Assembly: GCA_020536535.1 (NCBI GenBank)
Contig: JAHLWZ010000125.1
Location: forward strand, 1 to 33,230
Source: Pelomyxa schiedti
Lineage: Eukaryota > Protista > Evosea
DNA: 33,230 nt
Direction of reading: 5' to 3'
Shown here: one piece after another, positions 1 through 32,660 of the stretch
Layout of the letters: each line of letters begins with the position of its first letter
Numbering within the stretch: position 1 is the first letter of the stretch
Translations under genes and position numbers: made by a program
The notes under the pieces: generated by a model
What the model was told of the DNA's origin: nothing
The model's database searches: none
The model's input: only the letters and a program-made list of their open reading frames with translations

Positions 1-1424
1 CAACATCACATTTCATGAATCTTTTTGCACAAGGTGCCCTCTTGACAAGGTAATGAATCACTTGAAATCAGAAGAGCTTCTTCCACCAATGCAAAAACAC
101 ATCAGATTGTGAAGATGGAAGTTGAGAAGCGATTTGGGGTGGATGAAAACCAACAGGTTGTCTCTCTGGTTGTTGGTGCTACACAAGAAGTGTCACTCTC
201 TGACACTTCATCAACACTTTCTCAGTTGTTCTCTCTTCTCCCACAATCCACTGCATTGTCATCGCCAGGTATGTAAGCCCTCGTTTTGCCATCCCATTCC
301 AACAACAAAAAGGAAAAGAAGACGAAGAGGAAGCAAGCAACACAGCAGTGGCACAAGTGAAGGTGAGGATGAAACCAGTGATGACAATCATGGAGTCTGA
401 TCTGAGCCATGTTTCCACACTGGGGAGTGGCTGTTACGGAACTGTTTACAAGTACATCCACACGCCATCATCAAAGGAAGTTGCTGTGAAAACACTCTTT
501 GAGGTGTTAACATCACCACACAACGTTGAGAGATTCAGATTGGAAGCTGAGGTTTTCTTTTTCAACTTCACTCCAGATCAAATTGACACAAACAAACAAA
601 CACACAGATCGTGAGTGGATTGAGGCACCCCAACATTGTGAAGTGCCTTGGAACGTGCACAACAACAATATCAGGGAAACTGTTGATTGTTTCCGAGCTC
701 ATGTGTTGCAGTCTCAGACAGCTTCTGAAGCATGTGAGGAGTGATTCAATGAAGCAACGACTTGACTTCAAACAATTTGTCTCTATCTCACTTGGCGTTG
801 CCAATGGAATGGACAGCCTCCACAGGTGTAAATCCAACGAAACAAAACCAACAACAACTTATCAGTTGCTCACTCTGGCACAACAGGCAGAACATCATGC
901 ACCGAGATTTGAGCAGCAACAATGTTCTTTTTGACTCGAATGGAGTTCCAAAGATTTGTGACTTCGGTGTGTGTTTTTCCATCCCATCCCAATCACAACA
1001 CAAANNNNNNNNNNNNNNNNNNNNNNNNNNNNNNNNNNNNNNNNNNNNNNNNNNNNNNNNNNNNNNNNNNNNNNNNNNNNNNNNNNNNNNNNNNNNNNNN
1101 NNNNGTCATGCCTCTCAATTCTCGGTGTGTGTTCGTGTGTGTCTGTGTGTCAGTCTGTGAGTGGTGCTTGTGAGTTCTCACAATTTTACAGAGAGGAACC
1201 GGGTTCCGTTCACAGTGATTGTTCAACTCCTGCGATGTTGTTGCACATCGGCGGCCATCCATGACGTCACCACAACCCACCGCCGTGATTCATCATCATG
1301 CACATGCACCACCACCACCACCGTTGTGACTGACGACCAAGTGACTGAGTGCGTAACGCAGTGGCTGTACTCCCTCTCCCCGTTCATACACCACCTCGCT
1401 GCTGGTGCTGCTGCCACCTCATGA
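1..1424 (+). CDS. Partial MORN/UBL-kinase family gene K0 (5' end outside window; internal gap)
   Basis: Exons match K1: ITFHESFCTRCPLDK, VKMEVEKRFGVDENQQ, LGSGCYG, VAVK, HRDLSSNN, DFG, and last exon ERNRVPF ending TGA at 1424. N gap 1005-1104 hides part of the C-lobe. Confidence 0.8.
1005..1104. other. Assembly gap (100 N placeholder; others at 10117-10216 and 32561-32660)
   Basis: All three runs are exactly 100 N. Paralog comparison implies roughly 0.7 kb or more is missing at the first two. Confidence 0.95.
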
Positions 1425-1616
1425 GGCTCAATAATGCATAATCACACTGGTACCATTGCCAGTTCCACTTCTCCGCCCATACAATACTCCTGCTGCCAGA
1501 GTGATCATCATCACCCTGGATACGGCCTTCTCAGAAAGATCACGAACAAACACTTAAACCGGTTCAAGTCACTTTGACGAAACCCACCCGACACCTCCCC
1601 GTCTCAACCTTCACAA

Positions 1617-4600
1617 ATGCGGGGGCGGTTCGGCGGCTCATCGGACGCACCAACGCCAACAAACAAAGCTGTGGGCTACAACGGCGAGATGAAGGACGGC
1701 GTGGTGCACGGCCGAGGGTTCAACAGGTGGGACAACGGCAAGACCTACGAGGGCGAGTGGCGCCACGGCGAGTGCGACGGGTGGGGCGTGACCCGCTGGC
1801 CCGACGGCGAGTGGTTCGAGGGGCTCTACAGGGGCGACCGCCGCACGAGGGGCGCGTGCCACAGCGCAGACGGCGTCTACGTGTTGGACGGGGAGTGGGC
1901 GTGGAACGACGCGGCGCACACTGGCCAGATGCAGGGGTGGGGTGTGCGACGGCAAGTCAAGACGGGAGGCAATGTGACAACTATGGAAACGGTGTATGAG
2001 GGCCAGTGGGAAGAGCACAAGTGGCATGGCTGCGGGACATGGCACTCGCCTGATGGCTCGGGTGACATGTACCATGGCCAGTTTGACCACGGAAAGAGGA
2101 GTGGAACTGGGGGCATGTTGTTTGGGGGCACTGGAGGAGGGAGTTACGTTGGGGAGTGGAAAGATGACGTGTTCCATGGGAGGGGTGTCAGGATTTGGGG
2201 TGATGGGACGAGGTACGAGGGTGCTTGGGAGTGTGGCAAGGAGCATGGGGAAGGCACTAAAACGTGGGCATCTGATGGGACTTCAATCACTGGTGTTTGG
2301 GAGAAAGGTGCCATGGGGTCAGGAACAAAGAGGTGGCCAAATGGTGACGAATTCACTGGCAATTTCACAATGGATGGCGGCTGTGGGGAGGGCACGGCTA
2401 CATTCAGGAGTGGTGGGCCTTCTTCCAAAACAACAGTGACACTTGTTGGAACTTTTAAAGAGAATGTTTTTCAAGAATGTGGTGGAAGAGGCGTGTGTTG
2501 TCAAATTGGATGTGGTGACATTAAGCTGGAGGTTTGTGAATCTCCTCCTTGTTTTTTTCTATTAAACACTTGATGAACAGGAAAAAGTGAGAATGTTGGA
2601 GAGTAAACTTTCAGAGCTCCAAGTCAAACTTGACCAAGAGCAACAAGAGAAAACAGAGGCCATTTCGCAAGCAACAAAATCTTTGAGAGATCTTCAAAAC
2701 AAATGTGAGGAGCAAACAGAATGTGTGTATTTCTGAAAAGCAAAAATCCACACTAATTCCAAAAGTGATGGGTCTGCAGACCAAGCAGTTCATGGATCAA
2801 GAGGAGTGTATGTTTTCCCCTCAATTACAGCATCACCCAACACCCCAAATCCCAGATTTTGAACACACGTTGCAACACCTTCAAAAGGGGATGTGGGGAA
2901 AAACAAACTGTTCTCCAGGAAACACAAACAGCGGGTGTGTGATGGAGGAAGTTTCAATTACACTGGAAAGGCACAACATCACATTTCATGACTCACTTTG
3001 CACGAGGTGCCCTCTTGACAAGGTACCTTCTTGCAAGAACAAAAACACACTTGAAAGACACTCATTCAACACCAAAAGATTGTGAAGATGGAAGTTGAGA
3101 AGCGATTTGGGGTGGATGAAAACCAACAGGTCACCTTTTTGGTTGGGGCCACACGGGAAGTGTCACTCTCTGACACTTCATCAACGCTGTCTCAGTTGTT
3201 CTCTCTTCTCCCACAATCCACCACGTCATCATCAGGTTTCTTTTCCTTTGTTTTGCCATACCATTTCCCACAACAAAGAAAAGGAAAAGAAGGGGAAGCA
3301 AGCAACACAGCAGTGGCACAAGTGAAGGTGAGGATGAAACCAGTGATGACAATCATGGAGTCTGATCTGAGCCATGTTTCCACACTGGGGAGCGGGTGTT
3401 ATGGAACTGTTTACAAGTACATCCACATGCCATCATCAAAGGAAGTTGCTGTGAAAACACTCTTTGAGGTGATTGCATCACCACACAACGTTGAGAGATT
3501 CAGATTGGAAGCTGAGGTTTTCCTTTTCAACTTAGATTCGCCCCAGATCAAACTGACACAAACAAACAAACACACAGATCGTGAGTGGATTGAGGCACCC
3601 CAACATTGTGAAGTGCCTTGGAACGTGCACAACAACAATATCAGGGAAACTGTTGATTGTTTCTGAGCTCATGTGTTGCAGTCTCAGACAGCTTCTGAGG
3701 CATGTGAGGAGTGATTCAATGAAGCAACGACTTGACTTCAAACAATTTGTCTCTATCTCACTTGGTGTTGCCAATGGAATGGACAGCCTCCACAGGTGTG
3801 TAAATCCAACGAAACGAAACCAACAACAACTTATCAGTCGCTCACTCTGACTCGCACCAGGCAGAACATCATGCACCGAGATTTGAGCAGCAACAATGTT
3901 CTTTTTGACTCGAATGGAGTTCCAAAGATTTGTGACTTCGGTGTGTGTTTTTCCATCCCATCCCAATCACAACACAAATATTTTCTTTCTTCTGACACAT
4001 TCCAACCACACCCAACAGGAGTATCCCGCGGAATGCAATCCCTTAAGAGTGGTCCACAAACCATTGTTCCTGGAACAACAGTCCACATGGCACCACAGAT
4101 GTTCACAAACAACTACGCAATCGAGGGTGTGGTCTTCACCCACTTGCTCCTTTAATTTTTACACAATATACACAGGGGATTTGTGGGGGTTTGGAATGCT
4201 CATGGCAGAGATGATCAACGGCGATATTGTTGAATCCACGCTTGACAAGCTCCCTTTACACATGCAAGCAAATTTCTTGGGTGAAGCGATGAGGACCCTT
4301 TCACCTCCTGATGTCGCTGGTTTGCTTGCTTCTCTTTCTCTTTATTTATCGGAATAATATTAATCCAAAATAAATACAAAATCAAGAAATCAATGTATCC
4401 AGAAATAAATGGTTTGATCAAAAAATTTTAATTGAAATTACAATGAGAAGATAAAGAGTGTATAATTTGATGGGACTGCGCTTTCTTTTTTTAACAACAA
4501 ACAAAAGAGGTGAGGAGGCTGTGCTCTGAAGCTGGTGAGTCGGCGATTGCGCACTGTCTCAGCAGGAGGAATGCGGGTCTTGCTGCCGTGAACTATTTCA

Positions 4601-5024
4601 CACACTCTCCTGAATCGCCGCTCTTGACGTCGTCGTGTGGAACAACAACAACAGCATTGCCGACAACAGTGGGTGACCTCATATTCCTTGTTGTTCAGTC
4701 ATGCTTCTCCATTATCGGTGTGTCAGTCTGTGAGTGGTGCTTGTGAGTTCTCACAATTTCACAGAGAGGAACCGGGTTCCGTTCACAGTGATTGTTCAAC
4801 TCCTGCGATGTTGTTGCACATCGGCGGCCATCCACGACATCACCCGAACCCATCATGACGGGCCATTATCACCATGCACATGCACCACCACCACCACCAC
4901 CGTTGTGACTGACGACCAAGTGACTGACTGCATCACGCAGTGGCTGTCATCCCTCTCTCCGCTCATCCTCCTCGCTGCTTCTGCTGTTACCAGTTCCACT
5001 TCTCCACCACCGTCACTCCACTGA
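1617..5024 (+). CDS. K1: MORN repeats - coiled coil - putative ubiquitin-like domain - TKL-type protein kinase (multi-exon)
   Basis: Exon 1 (1617-2531) has MORN repeats (YEGEWxxGxxHGxG). Downstream exons splice in frame at GT-AG introns (e.g. 2532-2580, 2723-2765, 3023-3078). Kinase motifs GSGCYG, VAVK, HRDLSSNN, DFG|VSRG, HMAPQ, DLWGFG. Stop TGA at 5024. Confidence 0.88.
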
Positions 5025-5105: not shown

Positions 5106-8100
5106 ATGTGGGGGTGGTTTGCCCGCTCAGCAGCACCTGCAGCCGCGACAACAACCGACGCACCAACGCAACCAAGGTCGTCCACCAACAAAGCCGTGTC
5201 CTACAACGGCGAGACGAAGGACGGCGTGAGGCACGGCCGAGGGCTGGTGAGGTGGGACGACGGCAAGACCTACGAGGGCGAGTGGCACAACGGCGAGTAC
5301 GACGGGTGGGGCGTGGCGCGCTGGCCCGGCGGCGGCTGGTTCGAGGGGCTGTGGAGCGGCGGCGGCTGCACGAGGGGGGCGTACCACTGCAGCAACGGCG
5401 TCGACGTATTTGAGGGGGAATGGGCGTGGAATGCGACGGCGCGCACTTACCAAGTGCAGGGGTGGGGCGTGCAGAGGAGAGTGGTGAGTGGCAGGGGAAC
5501 AGATCGCGATCGTGAGGGCGGTGGGGCAACAACAACTGTGGAAACGGTGTATGAGGGCGAGTGGGAAAAGCACCAGTGGCATGGCTGTGGCACATGGCAC
5601 TCACCTGAGACGGGTGACATGTACCATGGTCAGTTCGATCATGGCAAGAGGAGTGGCACTGGGAGGGCACTGTTTGGGGTCAACGACGGCCAAGGGGGAG
5701 GGAGTTACGTTGGAGCTTGGAAGGATGGCAAGTTCCATGGGAGGGGTGTCAGGATTTGGGAAAATGGTGACAAGTATGAGGGTGATTGGGAGTGTGGGAA
5801 GGAGCACGGCTCAGGTACAAAAACGTGTGCATGTGACGGAACCTCAATGGTGGGTGTTTGGGAGATGGGTGTCATCAGGTCAGGAACAAAGAAGTGGCCA
5901 AATGGTGATGAGTTCACTGGCAATTTCACATTGCCTGGTGGTGGGTGGAAGGGAACGGCCACATTCCCTTGTGATTCACTTTTTTCCAACAGAAAAATCG
6001 CACTTGTTGGAACTGTTCAAGGGAATGTTTTCAAAGAAACAGGTGGTGGAGGCATGTGCTGTCACATTGGATACTGTAACATTCAATTGGAGGTGTGTTT
6101 TACTTTATAAAATTTTCCACATCATTTCTTAATATTTTTTTTTTGTTTATGCAGGAAAAAGTGAAAATGTTAGAAAGTGACAGGAAACAACATAAACACA
6201 CCCTGCAACACATTCAGCATGGAACGTGGGTCCAATCAGATCAAATGGAAAACAGGTGTTTCATGAAAGATGTTGCAGTCACACTAGAAACCAGAAACAT
6301 AACATTTCATGAATCTTTTTGTTCACAGTGCCCTCTTGACAAGGTAGAAACAAAACACCTTCTCAACCACAACAAAAAAAAAAAAAAGGTTGTAAGGATG
6401 ACAGTTGAGAAGCGGTTTGGAGTGGATGAAAACCAACAGGTTGTCTCCCTAGTTGGTGCTACAAAAGAAGAGCCAATCTCTGGGACATTAACACTGTCTC
6501 AGTTGTACTCTCTTCCCCCACATGCCACCACATCACCATCAGGTTTGCTGTTCTTATGTTGGTGCATTCCCTTCCATCCAAAACAAAAAAGGAAAACAAG
6601 TGGAACACGCAATCACAGCAGTGGCACAGTTGAAGGTGAGAATGAAACCTGTGATGGAAATCAAAGAGTCTGAGCTGAGCCACATTTCCACATTGGGACA
6701 TGGGTGTTGGGGAACTGTTTACAGGTGCCTTCACGCCCCATCATCAACAGAAGTTGCTGTGAAGAAACTTTTTGAGGTCATTGCATCAGATCACAACATT
6801 GCGAAATTCAAATTGGAAGCTGAGGTTTTCTTTATTCTTTTGCTGCTAATGCACAAGAAAAACAAATGCTTCAGATCACGAGGGAATTGAGGCATCCCAA
6901 CATTGTGAGGTGCCTTGGGATCTGCACTGGATCTGGTGGATCTGGGCACCTTCAGATTGTTTCTGAGCTCATGTGTTGCAGTCTCAGGCAACTTCTAGAA
7001 CTAATCAAAGGTGAAAAGTCAAAGAAGCAGCTCAGTTTCAGAGAGGTTGCAGCCATTGCACTGGGAGTAGCGAAAGGGATGGACACTCTTCACAGGTATG
7101 AGTGTGTGGTTTATCACGGTTTTGCTCTCCTTTACGCATCACTAAACAGGCAAAATATAATGCACCGAGACTTGAGCAGCAACAATGTACTCTTTGACTC
7201 CAAGGGAACTCCAAAGATTTGTGACTTCGGTATGTGAAGTACTGAAGAAGTTTCGTCTGTTCTCATCTGTGAAAAACAGGTGTATCACGAGGAATGAACA
7301 CACTGGCAATTAGCAATAGAACAATTGGACCAGGAACTCCAATTCACATGGCCCCACAGATGTCAACAAGTCATTACTCAATTCAAGGTTGCGGTTCTCT
7401 CTGTTGCCAACACAAAACTAAGAACACTTAGGAGATATGTGGGGGTTTGGTGTTCTTCTGGCTGAGATGATCAACTGTGACATTGTGGACTCAACCTTTG
7501 ACAAGCTCCCTCTCCGCTCTCAAGTCACTTTCATGGAGGACCAAATGAATAGCCTTTCAGCTCCTGATGTTGAAGGTTTATTTGGCAAGTCACACCAGCG
7601 AGAACTAACCAACAGAAAGAGGTTCGAAGACTGTGCAGGGAGTCAAGTGAATCAGCAGTTGCACACTGCCTCAGCAGGAGGAATGCTTGCCTTGATGTTG
7701 TGAATCGCCGCACACACTCTCCAGATGCACTGGCCCAAGTTCAAATTCTGGCAGCGGCAGACCTCATGTTCCTTGTTGTCCGTTCATGCCTTTCCATCCT
7801 TGGTGTGTGTGACACTCCCGCTTCCAAGCACTTGAACTAAAAATCACCACCACCAAAAAACAGAGAGAGACCGAATTCCGTTCAGTGTGATTGCGTTGTT
7901 GCTCCGTTGTTGTTGCACGTCAGCAACAATCCACGAAATTGAAAGCCAACAGACACCAACAACACGCACAGCATTTGGTACAGTGACAGTGACCGACGAC
8001 CAAGTGACCAACAGCATCGCTCAGTGGTTGTCATCGCTCTCCCCTTTCATTCACCGCCTCGTTGCTGTTTCCACAACAACCAGCACCCCTTCCTTGTCAT

Positions 8101-10000: not shown

Positions 10001-11695
10001 ATGTGGGGGTGGTTTGGCGGCACAACAACCAAACCACTACCAACGCCGACAAACGAAGTTGTGGGCTACAATGGTGAGATGAAGGATGGTGTGAGGCACG
10101 GCCGAGGGTTCTGGAGNNNNNNNNNNNNNNNNNNNNNNNNNNNNNNNNNNNNNNNNNNNNNNNNNNNNNNNNNNNNNNNNNNNNNNNNNNNNNNNNNNNN
10201 NNNNNNNNNNNNNNNNTTGCCATACCATTTCCCACAACAAAGAAAAGGAAAAGAAGGGGAAGCAAGCAACACAGCAGTGGCACAAGTGAAGGTGAGGATG
10301 AAACCAGTGATGACAATCATGGAGTCTGATCTGAGCCTTGTTTCCACACTGGGGAGCGGGTGTTATGGAACTGTTTACAAGTACATCCACACGCCATCGT
10401 CAAAGGAAGTTGCCGTGAAAACACTCTTTGAGGTGATTGCATCACCTCACAATGATGAGAGATTCAGATTGGAAGCTGAGGTTTACTTTTTTTTTTTTTG
10501 CTTCAATGTCTGCCTGACAAAACACAAGATCGTGAGTGGATTGAGGCACCCCAACATTGTGAAGTGCCTTGGAACATGCACAACAATATCTGGGAAACTG
10601 TTGATTGTTTCTGAGCTCATGTGTTGCAGTCTCAGACAGCTTCTGAAACAAATCTGAGGTGATCCTTCAAAGAGGCAACTCAGTTTCAGAGAAGTCACAG
10701 CCATTGCCCTTGGAGTTTCAAAAGGAATGGACAGTCTTCACAGGTTTGTGTGCAGTTTTTTATACTCTCTCCTTCACTCACACAGGCAAAATATAATGCA
10801 CCGAGACTTGAGCAGCAACAATGTTCTCTTTGACTCCAGTGGAACACCAAAGATTTGTGACTTTGGTGTGCACAGGTCAGAGGTTGTGTATTCTTATCAG
10901 TTTGAAAACAGGTGGATCACGTGGAATGAACAACACACAAGCAATGAGCAGTGGAGATACAACCATTGGACCAGGAACTCCAATTCACATGGCCCCACAG
11001 ATGTCAACAAATCATTACTCAATTCAAGGTTGTTGCTTGGTGTCCTCTCTAAAGACTAAGAACAGTCTCAGGAGACATGTGGGGATTTGGTGTTCTTCTG
11101 ACAGAGATGATCAACTGTGACATTGTGGACTCAACCTTTGACAAGCTCCCTCTCCGCTCTCAAGCCACTTTCATGGAGGACCAAATGAAGCAACTTTCAG
11201 CTCCTGATGTGGAAGGTTGATTGGCAAGTCACACCAGCGAGAACTAACCAACAGAAAGAGGTTCGAAGACTGTGCGGGGAATCAAGTGAATCGGCAATTG
11301 CACACTGCCTCAGCAGGAGGAATGCTTGCCTTGATGTTGTGAACCGCCGCACACACTCCCCAGATGCACTGGCCCAAGTTCAAACACCAGCAGCGGCAGA
11401 CCTCATGTTCCTTGTTGTCAATTCGTGCCTTTCCATCCTCGGTGAGTGTGTAACTCCCAACTCCCAATCTTGGCACCGCTAAACCAAAAAAACAGAGAGA
11501 GACCGAATTCCGTTCAGTGTGATTGTGTTGTTGCTCCGTTGTTGTTGCACGTCAGCAACAATCCACGAAATTCAGAGCCAAGTGACCGACGACCAAGTGA
11601 CCAACAGCGTCGCTCAGTGGTTGTCATCGCTCTCCCCTTTCATTCACCGCCTCGCTGCTGTTTCCACAACAACCAACACCCCTTCCTCGTCGTGA
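10001..11695 (+). pseudogene. K3: MORN-kinase copy with in-frame TGA; chimeric kinase; spans an assembly gap
   Basis: MWGWF start, then N gap, then kinase exons. In-frame TGA at 10655-10657 with the frame continuing into GDPSKRQLSFREV. The two sides of the gap may belong to different copies. Confidence 0.75.
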
Positions 11696-11907: not shown

Positions 11908-11999
11908 CGCTTAAATTGCCAAAGAGTACTACCCGACGTTGCTGCAGTTTGCTTGCTTTTCTTTTTTTTATATTTTATCAAAACAATAGTTTGATGTGA

Positions 12000-12770
12000 A
12001 GCGCCTCTGCTTCGGAGCTGTGTGGGTCGGCAATTGCACGCACGCTGCCTCGGCGCCGTGAAGGAACTCTCCCGAATCCCAGCTATTTACATCGTGTGGA
12101 ACAGCATTGCCGGCAACAGCCATGGTTGACCTCATGTTCATTGTTGTTCAGTCATGCTTCTCGATTTTGGGGTGTGTCTAACTTTCTACCCCAGTTTGAG
12201 AGGAACCCCTGATTCGGCATTATTTTTCTTGCATTCCTGTCAGGCTCCTCTCAACAATGAAGATCCTTTCTCACCTCCTCCCGTTGCTGGTTTGTTTGCT
12301 TCTCTTCATATTTCTCATAACAATCTAAAAATTCATTAATTGATACGCAAAAAACAGTACTTTCGATTTCTTGCAGTCACAACAACACAGGTGTGATCAT
12401 GAAAGTGAACAGGAAGGTGAAACAACAACAAGCCGGAAAGAACTGTTGATGGAACAAAGAAGAACTTACATTGCTGAAGTGACTTAAAGCTTGTCGCGTC
12501 GTTCCTGCTTTCCCCTGGGGGATTTCCAGCTATTTCCGGAATCCCGGTAATTGATGCCGTGAACTGTTAACTGTTTCAAGGTAAAAACCTAAAATGAGTC
12601 AACCCCCAAAAAAACACCACTTAGCAACAACAAAAAGGTTGTGAAGATGGAAGTTGAGAAGCACTTTGGAGTGGATGACAACCAACAGGTTGTCTCTTTG
12701 GTTGGAGCAACACAGGAAGAGATGACACCTAATCTGATGCTTACTAAAAGTTGGTTTTTGATTTCTGGGA
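12000..12770 (+). pseudogene. Degenerate kinase C-lobe and linker fragments
   Basis: 12050-12320 repeats 8860-9130. 12641-12770 encodes a truncated VKMEVEKHFGVDDNQQ exon. Confidence 0.7.
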
Positions 12771-12798: not shown

Positions 12799-15700
12799 TC
12801 ATAGGTGTATGAAAGGGGAGAGGGAGTACAGCCACTGTGTGATGCAGTCAGTCACTTGGTCGTCGGTCACAGTGCATGTACCACTACGCATGGTGATGTC
12901 ATGTATCACGGCTGATGTGCAACAACATCGCAGAAGCTGAACAATCACTGAGAACGGAGCCCGGTTCCTCTCTGTGAACTGGTGAGAAGAGTGATTTGAT
13001 GATTGCCAAGAAACACACCAAGAATGGAGAGGCATGACTGAACAACAATGAACATGAGGTAACCCGCTGTTGTTGGCAATGCTGTTGTTGTTGTTCCACA
13101 CAGCGATGTCAAGAGCGGCGATTCAGGAGAGTGTGTGAAATAGTTCACGGCAGCAAGACCTGCATTCCTCCTGCTGAGACAGTGTGCAATCGCTGACTCT
13201 CCGGCTTCATAACACAGTCTCCTCACCTCTTCTATTGTTAAAAGTGGAAGGATATGATATAGCAACTTATTTGATTCGGAGAGAAGTTATATAAAATTAT
13301 TGTATAAAATTGAAATAAGAAAACAAACCAGCAACATCAGGAGGTGAAAGTGTACACATTTGTACACCCAAGAAATTTGCTTGCATGTGTAAGGGGAGAT
13401 TGTCAAGCGTGGAATCAACAATATCGCCATTGATCATCTCTGTCATGAGCATTCCAAACCCCCACAAATCCCCTGTTGTATTGTAAAAGTAGAAAGAAGG
13501 GGTACAGTCGCACCCTCAATTGCGTAGTTGGTTGTGAACATCTGTGGTGCCATATGGACCACAGTTCCAGGAACAATGGTTTGTAGCCCGCTCTTTGGTG
13601 CATGTTGGTTCATTCCACGGGATACTCCTGTTGCAAGTCAGCAAGAAAAGATCCATTGTTGTGAATGTGATCGAGCTGGAACACACCAAAGTCACAAATC
13701 TTTGGAACTCCATTCGGGTCAAAAAGGACATTGTTGCTGCTCAAGTCTCGGTGCATGAACTTCTGCCTGTGTTCAGAGTGAGGGACTGTGATGTTTTTGT
13801 TTTGTTGTGTTAACATCACACCTGTGGAGGCTGTCCATTCCATTGGCGACACCAAGTGAGATGGAGACCAATTGTTTGAAGTCAAGTCGTTGCTTCATTG
13901 AATTGCACCTTACATACTTTAGCAGCTGCCTGAGACTACAACACATGAGCTCAGACACAATTAACAGTTTCCCAGATGCTGTTGTGCATGTACCAAGGCA
14001 TTTCACAATGTTTGGGTGCCTCAATCCACTCACGATCTGTGTTTGTAGATTGAATGGTGAATGAAACTGAAGGAAAATGAAAACCTCGGCTTCCAATCTG
14101 AATCTCTCAACATTGTGTGGTGATGTGATAACCTCCAACAGAGTTTTCACAGCAACTTCCCTTGACAATGGAGTGTGGATGCACTTGTAAACAGTTCCGT
14201 AACAGCCACTCCCCAGTGTGGAAACAAGGATCAGATCAGACTCTGGGATTGTCATCACAGGTTTCATCTTCACCTTCACTTGTGCCACTGCTGTTCCTTT
14301 TTGAAAAGTGAATGGGATGGTAAATAAGAAGGACAAACCTGATGAGGACAAGGTGGGTTGTGGAAGAAGAGAGGACAACGTTGATGAAGTGTCAGAGAGT
14401 GACACCTCCTGTGTTGCTCCAACCAAAGATACAACCTGCTGGTTTTCATCCACTCCAAACCGCTTCTCAACTTCCATCTTCACAACCTTTTCTTGTAGAA
14501 TGGGTGGTTTTTTGTTATTGCAAGAGAGATACCTTGTCAAGAGGGCACCTCGTGCAAAATGAGTCATGAAATGTGATGTTGTGTCTTTCCAGTGTAATGG
14601 AAATTTCCTCCATCACACACCTGTTGTTTCCTGGAGAACCGTTTGTTTTGGACCATGTTCCCTTTTGAAGGTGTTGCAACGTGTGTTCAAAATCTGATTT
14701 GGGGTGTTGGGTGATAGGTAATATTGAGGGAAGAACATACACTCCTCTTGATCCATGAACTGCTTGGTTTGTAGCCCCATTACTTTTGGGAATTAATATG
14801 AAACATTGATGGAAATTTCAAAGGAAACACACACATTCTGTTTGCTCCTCAAATTTGTTTTGAAGAACCTGCAGTGCCTCCCTTGTTCTTTTTGTTTCCA
14901 GCAATGCTTCCTCTTTTTCGTTTGACAGATTTTCCAGCTTGTTGTTTAACAGCTTTGTACGTACATACTCAAGCTCAGTTTGTTCCCTAAGGTGCCTTGC
15001 AGTTTCTAAGGTCACTTTTGGATTTTAGAGTCACAAGCTTTCAGGAAGTACACACATTCTGTTTGCTCCTCGAATTTGTTTTGAAGAAACTGAAGTTGCT
15101 CCCTTGTTTGTGCTGCCTCCATCCAGCCTTCCTCTTTCTCTTTTGACAACTTTTCAACCTTGCAGTTTGACTCCTTGATTTGAATGTCCCTCACTATCAG
15201 AGATCAACAAAAGTTTTTTTTGACAAAGTACACACACTCAGTTTGTGCCTCAAGTTCCTTTTGAAGATCTTCAACACCTTTCCTTGCTTTCATCATGGTC
15301 TCTGTTTTCTCTTTAGCCTGTCGTTCAACTTGGATTTGGAGCTCTGAGAGTTCCCTCTCCAACATTCTCATTTTTTCCTGTTTGACAATGTTATTCAATC
15401 ATTTAATCATAGACGCACACCTCCAGTTGAATGTCACCAGATCCAATGCAACAGCACATTCTTCTTCCACCACCACATTTCGTTTCTTGGAAAACATTCT
15501 CTTTGAAAGTCCCAACAAGTGTCATTGTGGTGCTGGTGCCACACCTGAACGTGGCCATGCCATCACCGCACCCACCGTTCATTGTGAATTTTCCAGTGAA
15601 TTCATCACCATTTGGCCACCTCTTGGTGCCTGACTTGATCACACCCATCTCCCAAACACCACCAATTGCGGTACCGTCAGTTGCCCACATTTTTGTGCCT

Positions 15701-18064: not shown

Positions 18065-18338
18065 TGCCAGAAGGGCAGACGAACTAACACCCCTTTGCTC
18101 TCGTTCTCTTGTTCTTGCTCTCTTGCTCTCGGTCTTTCTCTCTTGCTCTCACTCTTGCGCACCTACACCACTCCACTGGGCTCCTACGTGCCACTCTGCC
18201 ACATTCCCAACCTACACTCACTCCACTTCTCCATGATGTTCCCTGGCAATGCTTGTTTCTTTTTGCCAGGTAACTTGGCGTCATCACAGAGGACACACCC
18301 AAGTCGGTTTTTCTCTGGCCACCAAAGACACTAAAAAA

Positions 18339-20579
18339 ATGTTTAGCGTTTGTTCAATAACACCAACAGCGACAGCCACTACCACTCGTCCAACCACAAC
18401 CACAACCAAAACACCACCACCAACACCAGCAACAAACAAAGTTGTGGGCTACAGTGGCGAGACAAAGAACGGCGTGAGGCACGGCCGAGGGTTCCAGAGG
18501 TGGGACAACGGCGACACCTACGAGGGCGAGTGGCACAAGGGCCAGTGCGACGGGTGGGGTGTGTTCCACTGGGCCAGAGGCGATTGGTTCGAGGGACTGT
18601 TCAGGGGCGGCCACTCCCAGAGGGGAACAATCCACAGCAGAGGTGGTTGTGTTGAATGGGAGGGGGAATGGAGGACCACAGAAAAGAACCCCGCATTTTG
18701 GGGTGTGGAAAGAAGAGCCAAGAAGACGGAGACAACTGGTGATGGTCACGCAACTGCGACTGTGGATAATGTGTACAACGGTCAGTGGGATGGGTACAAG
18801 TGGAATGGCTGTGGCACATGGCACTCTCCTGACACTGGGGATATCTACCATGGTCAGTTTGATCATGGAAAGAGGAGCGGCACTGGAAGGATGCTGTTTG
18901 GTGGTGACAACAAGAGTGAAGGGGATGGAGGAGGGAGTTACATTGGGGAGTGGAAGGATGACATGTTCCATGGGAGGGGTGTGAGGCTGTGGGCAAACGG
19001 TGACAGGTATGAGGGCCAGTGGAAAGATGGGAAGGAACACGGAGAAGGAATGAAGAGGTGGTGCAGGGATGGGTCATCATTCAGTGGGTTGTGGGAAATG
19101 GGTGTGCCAAAGAAGGGAACGAGGAAGTGGCCAAATGGTGACCAGTTCGAAGGCATATTCACGCAGTCATCACAATGTGGAGGGAGTGGTGGATGGGGGT
19201 GTTGTGGTGAGGGTGTTGTGACGCTCTCCTCAGAAAATAATAGTCTGCTTCATTTTAGGGGTTTGCTCAATGGCAACACTTTCCAACAAACAATAACGTA
19301 TTGTGCTGAGAATTATGAGGCTTCTCTGGTTCGACATAAAATGGGATTGTATCTGCAGACTGAAGTGTGTATGAGAGAGGGAAACCACCAATTTCTTGCT
19401 CTCCCTGCACTGGAAAATGCTTTCACACTGGCAACACAGTTCCAAACCCAGCTACAAAAAGCATCATCTGAGTTTGTTTTGCTTGAGAAGTCACTGGCCA
19501 CCATCATTCAGAGCCTCCAAGGTGCCACACAACACAACCAGTCACTGGCATCACACTTGAGGGAACTTGTTGCACTGAAGGATGGACTGGGAAAGAAACT
19601 TGATGCAACATGTGAAGAGTGCAAGAAGGCTCTTGGGCAGACTCTGACGGATCAGAGCAGTGAGTCAGAGATTCAGCAGTGCTCCAGGAACATCTCAGAG
19701 TTGACAAAGAAGTTGTTGGAAATCAAGCCAGTTACCCCTGTGATGGAAGCTACTGTCCTGGTTCCGTCACCACCAAAAGGTATCCTCCCAAATAATGTTG
19801 AAAAAGGTAACAATTCCCAAACAGGATTTCATTACTTGATGCAACCTTTGATTTTGCGTGTGCAACAACCCCCAGACGTTCTGTCCACCACAGTGGCACC
19901 TTTCAATCTGTTGACATACACATTGTCCCTGCTTCAAGGGTGCAACTTTTCAGAGTGCACAATGCTTGCAGACAAACACACCATGCTGTCAAAGGAACTT
20001 GCTGAGCAGATCACATTGGGCCACAACCTCCACAATCAAATCGAGAAAATGCAGGGAGCATGCACAGACCTGATGAGGGAACACAAGTCCAAGTGGATGT
20101 TGGTACGTGGACTGGAGGGTGATGAGCGGTTCATCCAGTGCCCTGACGTGCAGTCACTTCTCTCTCCGTTGCTCCCTCAGGCTCAGCAGGCCATTATTGA
20201 CCTCATGGTGTCCAAAGCAGCGTCACTGGCTGCTGCACTTTCCTCGTCTCAGAAGATTCATCAGCAACAGATTCAACAACCACAGCAACCACCAGGCACG
20301 GCCACAAAGAGCCCTGCTCTTCAAGGTTGCACTGCTGCACAGCAACAACTCACAACACCAGTATTAGTAGAGGTTTGCATTGAGTGTGATGAGGAGCCAC
20401 CCAATGTCATTCTGCACCCCTGTGGACACGCTGTTCTGTGCTCTGAGGTTTACTCCTCCTTTTATTTTTCTTCCCAAATTTGCGACCAACCAACCAACCA
20501 CAACACATAGTGTGCAGCGACAGTGAGAAAGTGTCCTCAATGCAGAGCCCCAATCACTCAGAAACAGTTGAAACAATAA
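18339..20579 (+). CDS. RING-A: MORN repeats - coiled coil - C-terminal C3HC4 RING E3 ligase
   Basis: Long ORF with MORN repeats and a heptad-rich middle. Spliced RING CIECx11CGHx3CSE|Cx6CPQCR has IAP/neuralized-type spacing. Stop TAA at 20579. Confidence 0.88.
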
Positions 20580-20688
20580 TAAATTTTTTTTTATTAAAAT
20601 TTAGGTCTGGTGATCATTTTCGACCAAGTTGTTCTTCTTACCAAACCCAAACATCGTCGTCGCCAACAGAAAAAAAACAACATCAAAA

Positions 20689-23210
20689 ATGCGGAGAGAG
20701 TCACCAAAAACAAGGGAAGAAACAACAGTAGCAGTAACCATGACTAACACAAACAGTGCAACATCGACGAATGCACCGCCGCCTGAACCAAAAATTAAGT
20801 ACCAGGGGGAGAGGAAGGACGGCATGCAACATGGACGAGGGGTCCAAAGCTGGGCAAATGGCACTACATACGAGGGTGAGTGGCACAGCGGCAAGCAGGA
20901 TGGGTGGGGTTTGTACCACTGGCCCGACGGCAGTTGGTTCGAAGGACTGCAAAGGAGCAGTCGCCGTCAGAGGGGTACATACCACAGCGCAAACGGTGTG
21001 GATGAGTGGGAGGGAGAATGGGAAGACAAAGGAAAGAGAATGCAAATGCAGGGATGGGGTGTGCAACGGAGAGTGGTGAAGAAGATAGGAGCAAGCAATA
21101 CTGGTGACAGTCGTGGTGAAACAGTGGCCGTGGAGACTGTGTATGAGGGCCAGTGGGATGGGTACAAGTGGCATGGTAACGGAACATGGAAATCACCTGC
21201 TACTGGTGATATCTACCATGGTCAGTTTGATCATGGAAAGAGGAGTGGCACCGGAAGGATGCTGTTTGGTAGTGACAACAGTGAAGGGGATGGAGCAGGG
21301 AGTTACGTCGGGGAGTGGAAGGATGACATGTTCCACGGGAGGGGCGTCAGAATTTGGGGTGATGGCACGATGTATGAGGGTGATTGGGAGTGTGGGAAGG
21401 AGCATGGGGCAGGCACAAAAACGTGGGCACGTGAAGGTACTTCGATTGGTGGTGTTTGGAAGACAGGTGTGATCATGTCAGGCACAAAGAAGTGGGCAAA
21501 TGGTGATGAATTCACTGGAACGTTCACAATGAATGGTTCTTGTGGAGAAGGCATGGCCACATTCAAGTGGGGTTTGCCTTTCAACCGTCTTGTTGGGTGC
21601 TGCAAAAACAATGTTTTCCAAGAAACACAACGTGGTGGTGGAAGAGGTCTTTGCTGTGGGATTGGATGTAGTGATCTTCATCTGGAGGTGTTATACCAGA
21701 TTTTTCACTACTTTTGTTTCCTTCAGTGGGGTGGGAAGGAAACTGCACCAAAAGAGAACAAAGAGGCACAAAGTATTTTATTCATCTTGGAATGGATGGA
21801 TACATTTGGGTGTGTTTGTGTTGAGGTTTTTTTGTATATTTGGAAAGAAATGAGGTGAACTCGGTGTGCATTTATAAAGGATTCCAAAGTCAAAGGAAAG
21901 GTCTTGGGTATCTCGATGATCTTTCTGTGAACTTGATTTCCGAACTTGGTAAGTGATGACTCAGCCTCTGAGTCTCCAGTCTCGAGTCTTGCGAGTGCGC
22001 CTTGCGCACAGTTTGCCTGTGTGTTCGCAGAATCACACACTTTAAGTGAACCCTTACTTATATTTCTGTTATGCCAGGAAAAAGAGGGAAATAACCAAGG
22101 AAGTGGAACCACACCATTTTTTCATGCTCTCCCTGAACTGGAAAAGGCCTTCACACTGGCAACACAGTTCCAAACCCAGATAAAAAAAGCATCATCTGAG
22201 TTTGTTCTGCTTGAGAAGTCACTTGCCAACATCAATGAAAGCCTCCAAGGTGCCACACAACACAACCAGTCACTGGAATCACACTTGAGGGAACTTGTTG
22301 CACTGAAAGATGGACTGGGAAATACATTTGAAGAAACATGTGAAGAGTGCAAGAAGGCTCTTGGGCAGACTCTGACAGAGCAGAGCAGTGAGTCAGAGAT
22401 TCAGCAGTGCTCCAGGAACATCTCAGAGTTGACAAAGAAGTTGTTGGAAATCAAGCCAGTGACCTCTGTGACTGAAGGCAGTTTCCTGGAGCTGGTTCCG
22501 TCACCACCAAAAGGTATCCTCCCAAACAACACAAAAGCAAGGTAATAGAGTCCCCAAACAGGATATGATGACTTGATGCAACCTTTGGTTTTGTCTGCGC
22601 AGCAACAACCCCCAGATGTTCTGTCCACCACAGTGGCACCTTTCAGTCTGTTGGCTCCAGTCACAGACACATTGGTGCTTCTGCGAGGATGCCAGTTTTC
22701 AGAGTGCACGAAGCTTGTGGACCAGCACACCATGCTGTCAAAGGAACTTTCTGAGCAGATCACATTGGGCCACAACCTCCACAACCAAATCGAGAAAATG
22801 CAGGGAGCATGCACAGACCTGATGAGGGAACACAAGTCCAAGTGGATGTTGATGCGGGGACTGGAGGGTGATGAGCGGTTCATCCAGTGCCCTGATGTGC
22901 AGTCACTTCTCTCTCCATTGCTCCCTCAGGCTCAGCAGGCCATTGTCGACCTCATGGTGTCCAAGGCTGCATCACTTTCACTTGCACAGCAACACATCAC
23001 CTTAGCGGAGGTTTGCATTGAGTGTGAAGAGAAGCCACCCAATGTTATTCTGCACCCCTGTGGCCACGCTGTTCTGTGCTCTGAGGTTTCTTCCTTTTAT
23101 TTTTCCCAATTTGCAACCGACCAACCACACACACACAGTGCGCAGCCACAATGAGAAAGTGTCCTCAATGCAGAGCCCCAATCACTCAGAAGCAAATCAA
23201 GCAATTGTAA
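20689..23210 (+). CDS. RING-B: kinase-class MORN exon - coiled coil - RING E3
   Basis: Exon 1 ends CCGIGCSDLHLE|GT. Coiled-coil/RING exons from about 22078. Stops at 22543-22548 lie in a 48-nt intron (22514-22561). RING ends CPQCRAPITQKQIKQL*. The junction at 21690-22078 is uncertain. Confidence 0.75.
22333..22967. repeat. Near-identical inverted segment shared with about 26203-26835
   Basis: About 630 bp with roughly ten differences by eye, including an identical intron. ORF-track entries 22401-22883(-) and 26285-26767(+) differ at 2 residues. Confidence 0.9.
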
Positions 23211-29694: not shown

Positions 29695-30540
29695 TGTTAA
29701 TGTTCAGGTGCATTTCGGTGAGATTCTGGTGATGACTGCTAGTGATAAGTTGGAGCACCACAATGTCAACTGCTTGGCAGAAACTGAAGAGTCTGATCAC
29801 TGGGAAACCTTCTCCAACAACGATACACAAGCCGATCGGAGCTTTATGTGCTTGACACGGCATTTACAAGGGGCTTCCAGCTTATTTCTGGCATGTATCT
29901 TGTGAATGTGTTGCCAATTATCGGATCACTTTCTCACCAGTTCGACAGATTCCCTTGCTGAAAGCAACAAAAATTATGTTCGTGGTACAATGGTCCACAT
30001 GGCACCGCAGATATTCACAAACAACTACACAATTGAGGGTGTGGCATTTCTTCCTTCTTTATTACTGACTCCTGAGTACAACAACAGGGGATTTGTGGGG
30101 CTTTGGAATGGCAGAGATGATCAGTGGTGATATTGTCATTGACTCCCCACTTGACAAGCTTCCTCTTAGTTCACAAGCAAATTTCTTTGGGGAACAAATG
30201 CGGACACTTCCACCTCACGTTTCTGGTTTTCTTGTGTCTCTTTATTTCGAATATTATTTTAATTAATTAGTTACTAGTATAATAACTATTTATTATATAG
30301 TATATAGTATTAATAATATTATTATAATACTATTACTTAATAATATTAATAATTATTAATAATAAGTTGCAGTGTATAATTTAATTCTTACACCACAAAA
30401 GAGCTGAAGAGGCTGTGCTGAATCCGGCGAGTCGGCGATTGCACACTGTCTCAGCAGAAGGAATGCCGGTCTTGCTGCCGTGAACTATTTCACACACTCT
30501 CCTAAATCGCTGTGGAACAACAGCATTGCGAACTATTTCG
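29695..30540 (+). pseudogene. Degenerate kinase 3' half
   Basis: Remnants GTMVHMAPQIFTNNYTIE, DLWGFG, LDKLPL and AIAHCLSRRN, with deletions and frameshifts. No intact N-lobe. Confidence 0.8.
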
Positions 30541-30808: not shown

Positions 30809-32560
30809 ATGTGGGGGTGGTTGGCCAGCTCACAAAAAAAAGAAACAACAACACCCACAGCTGATGCACCAACGGCGACAAGTAAAACGCCAACGCCAAC
30901 AAACAAAGTAGTGGGCTACAATGGCGACATGAAGGACGGCGTGAAGCACGGCCGAGGGTTCATGAGGGGAGCCGACGGCGGCGACACCTACGAGGGCGAC
31001 TGGCACAAGAACAAGTGCGACGGGTGGGGTGTGTACCGCTGGGCAAACGGCAATTGGTTCGAGGGGCTGCTCAGGGGTGGTCACTGCCAAAGGGGCACAT
31101 ACCACAGCGAAAATGGTGTTGATGAATGGGAGGGGGAATGGAGCACCACAGAAAAGGAGATGCGAATGCAGGGTTGGGGCGCAAGGAGAGCCAAGAAGAT
31201 AGTAACAAATCCCAGTGACAATCGTGAGACCGTGACTCTGGAGACTGTGTATGCTGGTGAGTGGGACGGGGACAAGTACCATGGCTGTGGCACATGGCAC
31301 TCACCAGCAGGTGACATCTACCATGGTCAGTTTGATCACGGAAAGATTAGTGGCACAGGAAGAGCACTGTTTGGTGACAAAAGCCAAGGGGGTGGAGGAG
31401 GGAGTTACGTTGGGGAGTGGAGGGATGCTAAGTTCCATGGGAGGGGTGTCAGGATCTGGGGAGATGGGACGAGATACGAGGGAGATTGGGAGTGTGGGAA
31501 GGAGCATGGGGCAGGCACGAAAACGTGGGCATGTGATGGGACTTCAATTGGTGGTGTTTGGGAAATGGGTGTGATTAAGTCAGGAACAAAGAGGTGGCCA
31601 AATGGTGATGAGTTCACTGGAAAATTCACAATGAATGGTTGTTGTGGTGAAGGAACAGCCACATTCAGAAGTGGTGGGGCATCTACAACCAATACAGTGA
31701 CACTTGTTGGGACTTTCAAAAAGAACCTTTTCCAGGAAACAAAATGTGGTGGTGGTGGAGGAATGTGCTGCAACATTGGATATGGTGACATTCAATTGCA
31801 GGTGTGTACAAGATTAGAAGCCATCATTACTGAATGTTTTATGTAGGAAAAAGTGAGGATGTTGCAAGACACATTTGAGAAACAAACAATAGACAAAGAC
31901 ACTCAAAAAGAACGTAGGTGGTTTGAGTCTCTTGTTGTCTCATTCCTTCCCAACCACAGTGATGAACAACCAAATAAAAGAGTTGAAAGATAAAATGGAG
32001 CAACTGTCAAACAATCTTCACGAACAACTGGAACAACAAACAGAATGTGTGTAGTATGACCCTTCCTTTGCTTGTTGTATTTTCATTGAATCTTACAAAT
32101 CCCCAAAAAGTGATGCAAATACAAACCAAGGAGTTCAAGGAGCAAGAAGAATGTGTGTGAACTTTTTTGTTTTTTTTTTTGCTCATTCCCACGCAAGACA
32201 TTGAACACACCTTGCAACACATTCAACAGGGAATGTGGGTCAAATCAAATCAAATGGAAAACAAGTGCGTCATGAAAGAAGTGATGGTAACACTAGAAAC
32301 AAGCAACATCACATTTCATGAATCCTTTTGTTCACAGTGCCCTATTGACAAGGTAAAAACAACAAACCAACTCACCTACAGGGCGGGCACAACACCCAAA
32401 AAGGTTGTCAGGATGGAAGTTGAGAGGCGATTTGGAGTCGATGAAAGTCAGCAGGTTGTATCCCTTGTAGTTGGACAACAGGAATTGTCACTCTCTGACA
32501 CTTCATCAACTCTGTCTCAGGTTCTTCTCTCGCAAGCAACATCATCAGGTTTGCTGTTTG
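30809..32560 (+). CDS. K5: kinase-class MORN - coiled coil - UBL-like gene, truncated by gap
   Basis: MWGWL start; MORN exon ends DIQLQ|GT. Coiled-coil exons 31847-31913, 31960-32046, 32111-32152, then VVRMEVERRFGVDESQQ. The kinase portion is not visible. Confidence 0.78.
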
Positions 32561-32660
32561 NNNNNNNNNNNNNNNNNNNNNNNNNNNNNNNNNNNNNNNN
32601 NNNNNNNNNNNNNNNNNNNNNNNNNNNNNNNNNNNNNNNNNNNNNNNNNNNNNNNNNNNN

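Follow-up and report, generated by a model that had tools for sequence, protein, structure and literature searches.

A predicted ubiquitin-fold domain directly ahead of a Raf-like kinase in a gene family of Pelomyxa schiedti

Introduction

What is the stretch of about 100 residues that lies, spread over three exons at 2942-3345, directly ahead of a Raf-like (TKL) kinase in the amoeba Pelomyxa schiedti, and what might it do there? The DNA that raises this question is a 33,230-nucleotide stretch of the P. schiedti genome (assembly GCA_020536535.1, contig JAHLWZ010000125.1, forward strand). The whole of this stretch is called the window here; it is eukaryotic, with short GT-AG introns, and contains three 100-N assembly gaps. 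The kinase gene, which we call K1, has several related copies in the window, and genes for MORN-RING proteins belong to the same array. An earlier note, made from the letters of the window, had read the segment as a cryptic ubiquitin-like domain (UBL) of the beta-grasp type and had placed it in a ubiquitin-linked circuit with the neighboring RING ligases. The paper describing the P. schiedti genome makes no mention of protein kinases, MORN repeats or ubiquitin (PMC8887013). Judged by the models described below, these ~100 residues form a true ubiquitin-fold (beta-grasp) domain that has diverged greatly, and its likeliest role is that of a regulatory element built into the kinase, as opposed to a degradation tag.

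Predicted Fold and Structure Searches

Because the K1 domain spans two introns, a K4-like paralog, P0003, was folded in its place. The target, P0003:36-141, is 88-100% identical to the exon translations of the window copies K1, K0 and K4, and it was modeled with AlphaFold2 from an alignment of 28 sequences (alignment A4). The resulting model had a mean predicted local distance difference test score (pLDDT) of 82.3 and a predicted template modeling score (pTM) of 0.73, with low confidence confined to the long loop before the last strand. Its elements are strands at residues 6-13, 18-25, 49-54, 61-63 and 89-95, a helix at 30-42 and a short helix at 71-74. This order, beta-beta-alpha-beta-beta-(short helix)-beta, is the topology of ubiquitin and places the modeled segment in the ubiquitin-like beta-grasp superfamily. 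The same UBL elements were found, at pLDDT 82-87, in a second AlphaFold2 model, that of P0018:333-760, which covers a conserved upstream motif, the UBL and the kinase (overall pLDDT 83.8, pTM 0.81; pLDDT 77-89 at the UBL-kinase junction).

Two structure searches, both queried with the predicted model, returned the same class of domain. In the Foldseek search against the PDB the best 50 matches were all ubiquitin or UBLs, 49 of them at a probability of 1.00. The best match was the UBL of TBCE (E 9.6e-5), and the TM score by target was 0.7-0.8 for ubiquitin. VIA-align, which is independent of Foldseek and was run over 48,161 representative chains, likewise gave ubiquitin, SUMO, UBL or UBX domains for all of its best 50 matches (Z 8.9-10.3), with the TBCE UBL (4icu) at Z 10.2 and a root mean square deviation of 2.0 Å over 79 residues. 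None of the PB1, RBD/RA, DCX and ferredoxin domains appeared among the best 50 of either search, so the segment fits neither the PB1 domains of PB1 kinases, for which there was also no Pfam match, nor the Raf-type RBD/RA domains. The topology of the model and the two sets of 50 matches thus bear out the beta-grasp UBL proposed from the letters alone. When the UBL-kinase model was used for a shape search of the ESM-Atlas, the listed rows aligned over ~250-300 residues, roughly the size of a kinase; none of the listed clusters carried a ubiquitin-type Pfam family, and no other UBL-before-kinase architecture was found among them.

Sequence Signal to Ubiquitin

The sequence signal is faint, and it points in one direction. 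A profile of the 28-member family was compared with all PDB sequences using HMMER, and all 18 matches at E<=10 were ubiquitin. Profile positions 34-95 aligned with ubiquitin 26-79, in a register consistent with the predicted structure. V26, K27, G35 and Q41 of ubiquitin coincide with near-invariant Val, Lys, Gly and Gln residues of the family, respectively; K27 and Q41 are buried, conserved core residues of ubiquitin. The two short alignments that the earlier note had offered by eye, VKMEVEKRFGVDENQQ with VKAKIQDKEGIPPDQQ and LSDTSSTLSQL with LEDGRTLSDY, are those that HMMER gives. When exon translations were scanned singly with Pfam, the sole match for the segment was a faint one, of the ubiquitin family PF00240 (clan CL0072) to the K4 translation (E 0.048). 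At 13.9 bits this was the best score against that family and lies below its gathering threshold of 25.4, so the sequence alone does not assign the segment to PF00240. A word search for relatives of the ubiquitin-like sequence P0036:1-76, from which a ubiquitin profile could be built, brought up no candidates. The earlier note had tied its reading to a predicted beta-grasp fold and to a significant profile match within the ubiquitin clan: the fold is predicted, while the profile match is specific and statistically not significant. True homology to ubiquitin is probable, being evident at the level of the fold and only suggested at the level of the sequence.

The end of the domain differs from that of ubiquitin. 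The positions aligned with Gly75 and Gly76 are Pro in 20 of the 28 members and Val in 15 of the 28, respectively, and a Gly-Gly end is absent. The chain continues instead into the kinase through K-P-V-M-T-I, E-S-D-L and then the Gly-rich loop. Because Pro-Val replaces Gly-Gly and the chain runs on into the kinase, a role as a conjugated modifier is impossible. By the weak HMMER register, the equivalent of Ile44 is Ser in 14/28 members, Phe in 8/28 and Tyr in 3/28, and that of Val70 is Lys in 18/28.

Gene Structure of K1

K1 is one gene of 12 exons with an open frame of 891 residues, and all eleven of its introns are GT-AG. From N- to C-terminus it encodes MORN repeats, a coiled coil, an H-x3-H..G-x-W motif, the UBL, the TKL kinase and a tail. 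The parts of the gene are given below; all are on the + strand, and the secondary-structure positions are those of the AlphaFold2 model of the paralog P0003 transferred to K1.

1617..2531: exon 1, the MORN-repeat sensor part; an open frame with MORN-type repeats that joins the later exons in frame and is homologous to the N-terminal part of P0010
2581-2722 and 2766-2807: exons 2-3, the coiled-coil linker; spliced in frame, heptad-like and rich in Glu, Gln and Lys
2808-2855: intron of 48 nt, inferred from comparison with P0003
2856..3022: exon 4, at the first base of which an RNA contig begins; last residues ..CPLDK; contains the H-x3-H..G-x-W motif (2864-2896), a loop, a Cys (2936-2938), beta1 (2942-2965), beta2 (2978-3001) and C-x2-C-P (2999-3013)
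3023..3078: GT..AG intron of 56 nt that separates the C-x2-C-P loop from helix alpha1; the RNA contig omits it, and it is absent in P0001 and P0003
3079..3235: exon 5, with alpha1, beta3 (~3127-3144), beta4 (~3157-3165), the short helix (~3184-3195) and the start of the low-complexity loop
3236..3283: intron of 48 nt, GT..AG; removed in P0006 and skipped by the paralog RNA contig
3284..3354: start of exon 6, with the remainder of the loop, beta5 (AQVKVRM, 3316-3336) and the conserved K-P-V-M-T-I junction
3355..5021: TKL (Raf-like) kinase domain and conserved C-terminal tail, through which P0006 threads exactly; the rest of exon 6 to 3516, then 3578-3795, 3861-3940, 4019-4126, 4176-4319, 4508-4717 and 4765-5021

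The splicing of the segment that the earlier note had used was confirmed by two kinds of evidence that follow the same exon joins. One is an RNA contig of a close paralog (run X1, record 1; single-cell library), which aligned to 2856-2991, 3076-3221 and 3287-3482; it omits both introns, and its start coincides exactly with the exon boundary at 2856. The NCBI protein P0006 threads without mismatch through 3088-3235 and 3284-3516 and then through six exons ending at 5021. The intron at 3236-3283 is in frame in K1 and reads through without a stop. An intron at this position is required in K0 and K2 because the frames before and after it differ there. The loop that the earlier note had left out of its spliced reading is FSLLPQSTTSSSGKEGEASNT. 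The ATG at 2942 is internal and not a start, as the exon begins at 2856 and its frame continues from the MORN and coiled-coil exons. Counterparts of the coiled-coil stretch occur in P0004, P0010 and P0016. The HMMER alignment to ubiquitin residues 26-59 maps onto exon 5, and in exon 6 the Val at 3328-3330 is kept in all 28 family members.

We noted that two public models, P0006 for K1 (starting at 3088) and P0007 for K0 (starting at 115), begin at the internal Met of ..VKMEVEK... Because of this the UBL is halved in these models, and the MORN and coiled-coil exons are split from the kinase.

The kinase itself has B-Raf and C-Raf as its nearest solved relatives (E ~1e-25), and the Pfam family PK_Tyr_Ser-Thr matched the paralog P0001 at 2.4e-18. 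The translated domain has the beta3 Lys, the helix-C Glu, HRD and DFG. Throughout the family the catalytic loop has the sequence HRDLSSNN, which is without Lys or Arg where they usually stand, and the APE motif is APQ (kinase exons ~3861-3940 and 4019-4126). Since both features are kept across the family, the kinase may have unusual catalytic properties. A post-kinase tail (..VTDDQV..I.QWLSSLSP..) was observed at 4765-5021 in the window and is conserved in all family members.

Cysteine and Histidine Motifs

An extra H-x3-C-x2-C motif had also been ascribed to the domain. As a conserved motif this did not hold up, as its His is kept in the window copies but in only 6/28 members. What the family does keep is C-x2-C-P, with the first Cys in 28/28 members, the second in 27/28 and the Pro in 28/28. 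The AlphaFold2 model places this motif where strand 2 ends and helix alpha1 begins. A further Cys stands two residues before beta1 in 21/28 members. The exon that encodes C-x2-C-P in K1 also carries, upstream of it and between the coiled coil and the UBL, the motif H-x3-H-x3-G-x-W. In alignment A5, most rows of which were selected by a pattern requiring the two His, each of the residues H, H, G and W is at least 90% conserved. The whole motif occurs at the same position in 27 aligned family members; P0021 and P0034, which are partial models, are without it. The pattern of conservation suggests that the two His and the two Cys may form a metal or redox site joining the helix before the domain to the beta-grasp.

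Two ferredoxin-related candidates were considered and rejected. A 2Fe-2S ferredoxin-type beta-grasp is not what the structure searches returned, since there is no ferredoxin among the best 50 of either. The cluster-binding Cys residues of ferredoxins lie in a different loop. A polyferredoxin was the sole PDB match of a profile built from the window copies only (A3). At E 4.5 it is a chance match whose likeness lies only in the C-x2-C-P string.

Family, Cassette and Neighboring Genes

The family was defined with a profile made from the window copies, P0001 and P0003; in a comparison with 1.84 billion representative proteins, this profile matched 37 family representatives at E<=0.001, 25 of them at E<=1e-10. 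Of these, 20 were sampled, and every one leads back to P. schiedti, 19 as NCBI proteins of that species and the twentieth as a Logan-assembly sequence that clusters with one of its NCBI proteins. The 27 other aligned members are 35-76% identical to P0003, with invariant core positions. In all complete members the UBL segment stands directly before a TKL kinase, and the N-terminal parts vary, comprising MORN repeats, ankyrin repeats, leucine-rich repeats (LRRs), a P-loop GTPase-like part (P0011), membrane anchors with MORN repeats, or ubiquitin. The unit of upstream motif, UBL and kinase is thus one cassette that has been combined with many different N-terminal sensor modules.

Several members are of note for their arrangement. 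P0036 (KAH3761622.1) has a recognizable ubiquitin at 1-76 in addition to the divergent pre-kinase UBL at 322-425. In the ankyrin-repeat protein P0022 (KAH3759292.1) the motif-UBL-kinase cassette is duplicated in tandem (segments 219-325 and 729-835). P0028, P0031 and P0038 belong to a membrane-anchored subfamily in which ~25 residues separate a predicted transmembrane helix from the H-x3-H motif and UBL that follow it, and the cytoplasmic part of these receptor-like kinases consists entirely of the cassette.

The copies of the UBL segment found in the window are the following.

2-551 (+): K0, with the domain at 2..400; cut by the start of the window; the NCBI model is P0007
2942-3516 (+): K1
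6263-6824 (+): K2, with the domain at 6263..6662; exon parts 6263-6343, 6389-6541 and from ~6592, placed by tblastn and DNA alignment
14613-14085 (-): K4, with the domain at 14240..14613; P0003 is 94-100% identical to its exon translations
32272-32547 (+): K6, with the domain at 32272..32550; runs into the N gap at 32561-32660, where beta5 is lost
12635-12730 (+): an isolated remnant of exon 2 of the domain (the alpha1-beta3 exon), which diverges after ..VGATQE

One more UBL copy, ahead of the kinase at 10247, is masked by the N gap at 10117-10216. The ratio of nonsynonymous to synonymous substitution rates (dN/dS) between the window copies is 0.19-0.36, and for this reason we regard the UBL segment as being under purifying selection. 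The array genes are interrupted by N gaps at 1005-1104 (in the K0 kinase), 10117-10216 (before the K3 kinase) and 32561-32660 (in the K6 UBL loop). Isolated fragments of kinase or UBL exons were also observed between intact genes, at 11993-12169, 12635-12730 and 29915-30509, and these are probably debris of tandem duplication.

The array also contains three MORN-RING genes, each with a C3HC4-type RING-like end (..C.EC......V.L.PCGH..LC..).

18249-20510 (+): MORN-RING gene
20629-23154 (+): MORN-RING gene
24065-23361 (-): MORN-RING gene

Comparison of these genes with the kinase genes found the MORN part in common and no counterpart of the UBL segment in the RING paralogs of the window. Because MORN is all that they share, the UBL segment belongs to the kinase cassette and not to the sensor. 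The presence of a RING end in place of UBL-kinase suggests output swapping within one array. The connection drawn earlier between the UBL and these ligases comes down to adjacency in a tandem array.

Role of the Domain

The reading that we favor, and to which we give somewhat better than even odds as a whole, is that the UBL is an integral part of the cassette and acts in cis on the kinase. It is integral, and not a modifier, because its last strand joins the first strand of the kinase within ~10 residues and Pro-Val replaces Gly-Gly. The UBL would probably pack on the N-lobe of the kinase and serve there as a fixed element for regulation or scaffolding. By analogy with the ubiquitin-like domain (ULD) of IKK-beta and TBK1, it could inform the kinase of the state of the coiled coil and sensor, such as oligomerization when a ligand is bound. 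A metal or redox site may lock or switch this arrangement, the candidate residues being the invariant C-x2-C-P at the start of alpha1 and the invariant upstream H-x3-H. Several observations weigh against this reading. The beta-grasp fold is a predicted one throughout, and the pTM of 0.81 for the two-domain model may come largely from the kinase. A single ubiquitin unit scores E ~1 with the family profile; the poly-ubiquitin value of 5.7e-6 is not to be counted, because it is the same weak match summed over repeats. Pfam gave no match at E<1 in any of the 28 members and nothing significant for the UBL of P0001 or P0003. When the family profile was compared by hhalign with P0036:1-76, a single ubiquitin-like sequence, the register was right and the probability 5.7%. 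Finally, the family as a whole is known from sequence and predicted structure.

The faintness of the profile matches, together with the low-complexity loop of ~20 residues, is what one would expect of a flexible linker with a chance likeness to ubiquitin. We consider this scarcely credible given the purifying selection, the invariant core positions at 35-76% identity to P0003, and a confident, repeatable AlphaFold2 fold whose structural matches are exclusively UBLs at Z 9-10. A small-GTPase-binding domain of the RBD/RA type, recruiting the kinase to an active GTPase, would suit a kinase nearest to B-Raf and C-Raf, as RBD and RA domains have the ubiquitin fold and P0011 has a GTPase-like N-terminus. 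It is nonetheless very unlikely, as the best 50 structural matches are of ubiquitin, SUMO or UBL type plus one FERM F1 lobe, with no RBD/RA, the sequence signal points to ubiquitin itself, and the K1 domain abuts its kinase where Raf has a long linker. The circuit proposed in the earlier note, in which ubiquitin-binding proteins, the proteasome or the MORN-RING ligases recognize the UBL in trans, or the UBL serves as a decoy, draws on the ubiquitin-like fold, on the MORN-RING genes of the same array and on the true ubiquitin domain that P0036 also carries. We find it improbable, if less so than a GTPase-binding role: the canonical Leu8-Ile44-Val70 patch appears not to be kept, going by the Ser and Lys that the weak HMMER register places at Ile44 and Val70, the RING paralogs have the MORN part without a UBL, the UBL always travels with the kinase whatever its neighbors, and duplication explains the tandem-array neighborhood.

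A greater, still tentative, likelihood attaches to the UBL being a sensor that controls the kinase as a metal or redox switch, with C-x2-C-P and H-x3-H binding zinc or the Cys pair forming a reversible disulfide, for example to report oxygen or oxidants in an anaerobe. This would be compatible with the UBL acting in cis as an integral part of the cassette. The near-invariance of both motifs, their place within one exon (2856-3022) and an upstream helix at pLDDT ~73 in the two-domain model speak for it. Against it, the His count leans on rows partly chosen for having both His, P0035 has H-x3-H but Thr in place of the second Cys, and the two Cys and two His lie on separate elements 35-60 residues apart, a spacing that fits no zinc finger tested. 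A more specific proposal, which we regard as speculative and rather unlikely, is a switchable ubiquitin fold in which a zinc or redox site formed by C-x2-C-P and H-x3-H clamps the sensor-side coiled coil to the kinase N-lobe.

Comparison with Known Systems

The ULDs of IKK-beta, TBK1 and IKK-epsilon act in cis on their kinases, and those of IKK-beta and TBK1 are needed for kinase activity. Like them, the K1 UBL is an integral, non-conjugated ubiquitin fold in a kinase polypeptide, beside a coiled-coil dimerization element. The order is kinase-ULD-coiled coil in that group, whereas it is coiled coil-UBL-kinase in K1, and the K1 kinase is a Raf-like TKL kinase with no sequence relation found to the IKK type, so K1 is not an IKK-type protein. 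The earlier note had stated that in the kinase-UBL fusions of IKK/TBK1 the UBL is C-terminal to the kinase. The reversal relative to IKK/TBK1 stands, but a beta-grasp domain N-terminal to a kinase has precedents in the Raf RBD, the PB1 kinases, the DCX kinases and the FERM F1 lobe.

Raf resembles K1 in arrangement, as its RBD and cysteine-rich domain set a beta-grasp beside Cys/His metal ligands (in K1 proposed ones) N-terminal to a Raf-like TKL kinase. In Raf, however, hundreds of residues separate the kinase from the RBD, the RBD binds Ras, and the zinc is bound by a C1 fold distinct from the RBD; the K1 UBL abuts the kinase, resembles ubiquitin and not an RBD, and has its Cys pair inside the beta-grasp. 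The best structural matches, the UBLs of TBCE (4icu, 1wjn), SF3A1, USP15 and TBCB, are also integral UBLs without conjugation, but their identity is 9-15%, their host proteins are unrelated, and they have neither the C-x2-C-P loop nor the long beta4-beta5 loop. Among PDB sequences the family profile matched ubiquitin only, in the right register; ubiquitin differs in having the Gly-Gly end and in being without the ~20 extra loop residues before beta5. The rubredoxin-like domain of mycobacterial PknG is, likewise, a small C-x-x-C domain directly N-terminal to a kinase, and it is thought to regulate that kinase via its metal or redox state. It has a rubredoxin knuckle fold with four Cys and belongs to a bacterial kinase, so the likeness is an analogy only.

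Significance

Most known examples of an integral UBL controlling a kinase belong to the IKK/TBK1 group, and the beta-grasp domains that precede Raf-like kinases are known as Ras-binding modules. None of the titles and abstracts returned by our literature search concerned a UBL directly N-terminal to a TKL kinase. The immediate impact of the finding is modest, because the family was found only in P. schiedti, an organism without genetic tools, and is drawn from sequences and models. One practical result is that public gene models are corrected, as the NCBI model of K1 begins in the middle of the domain. Here, a predicted fold like that of ubiquitin proper is joined directly to the N-lobe of a Raf-like kinase, with an invariant Cys pair of its own, in a cassette that this one amoeba has reused with six or more kinds of sensor module ahead of it. 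As a natural series, these proteins allow one to ask by what means a UBL relays upstream signals to its kinase. If the switchable clamp were true, metal or oxidant state would gate dozens of sensor kinases with different tips (MORN, LRR, ankyrin, GTPase and membrane-anchored) by way of a cassette common to them all, in an anaerobic, symbiont-bearing amoeba.

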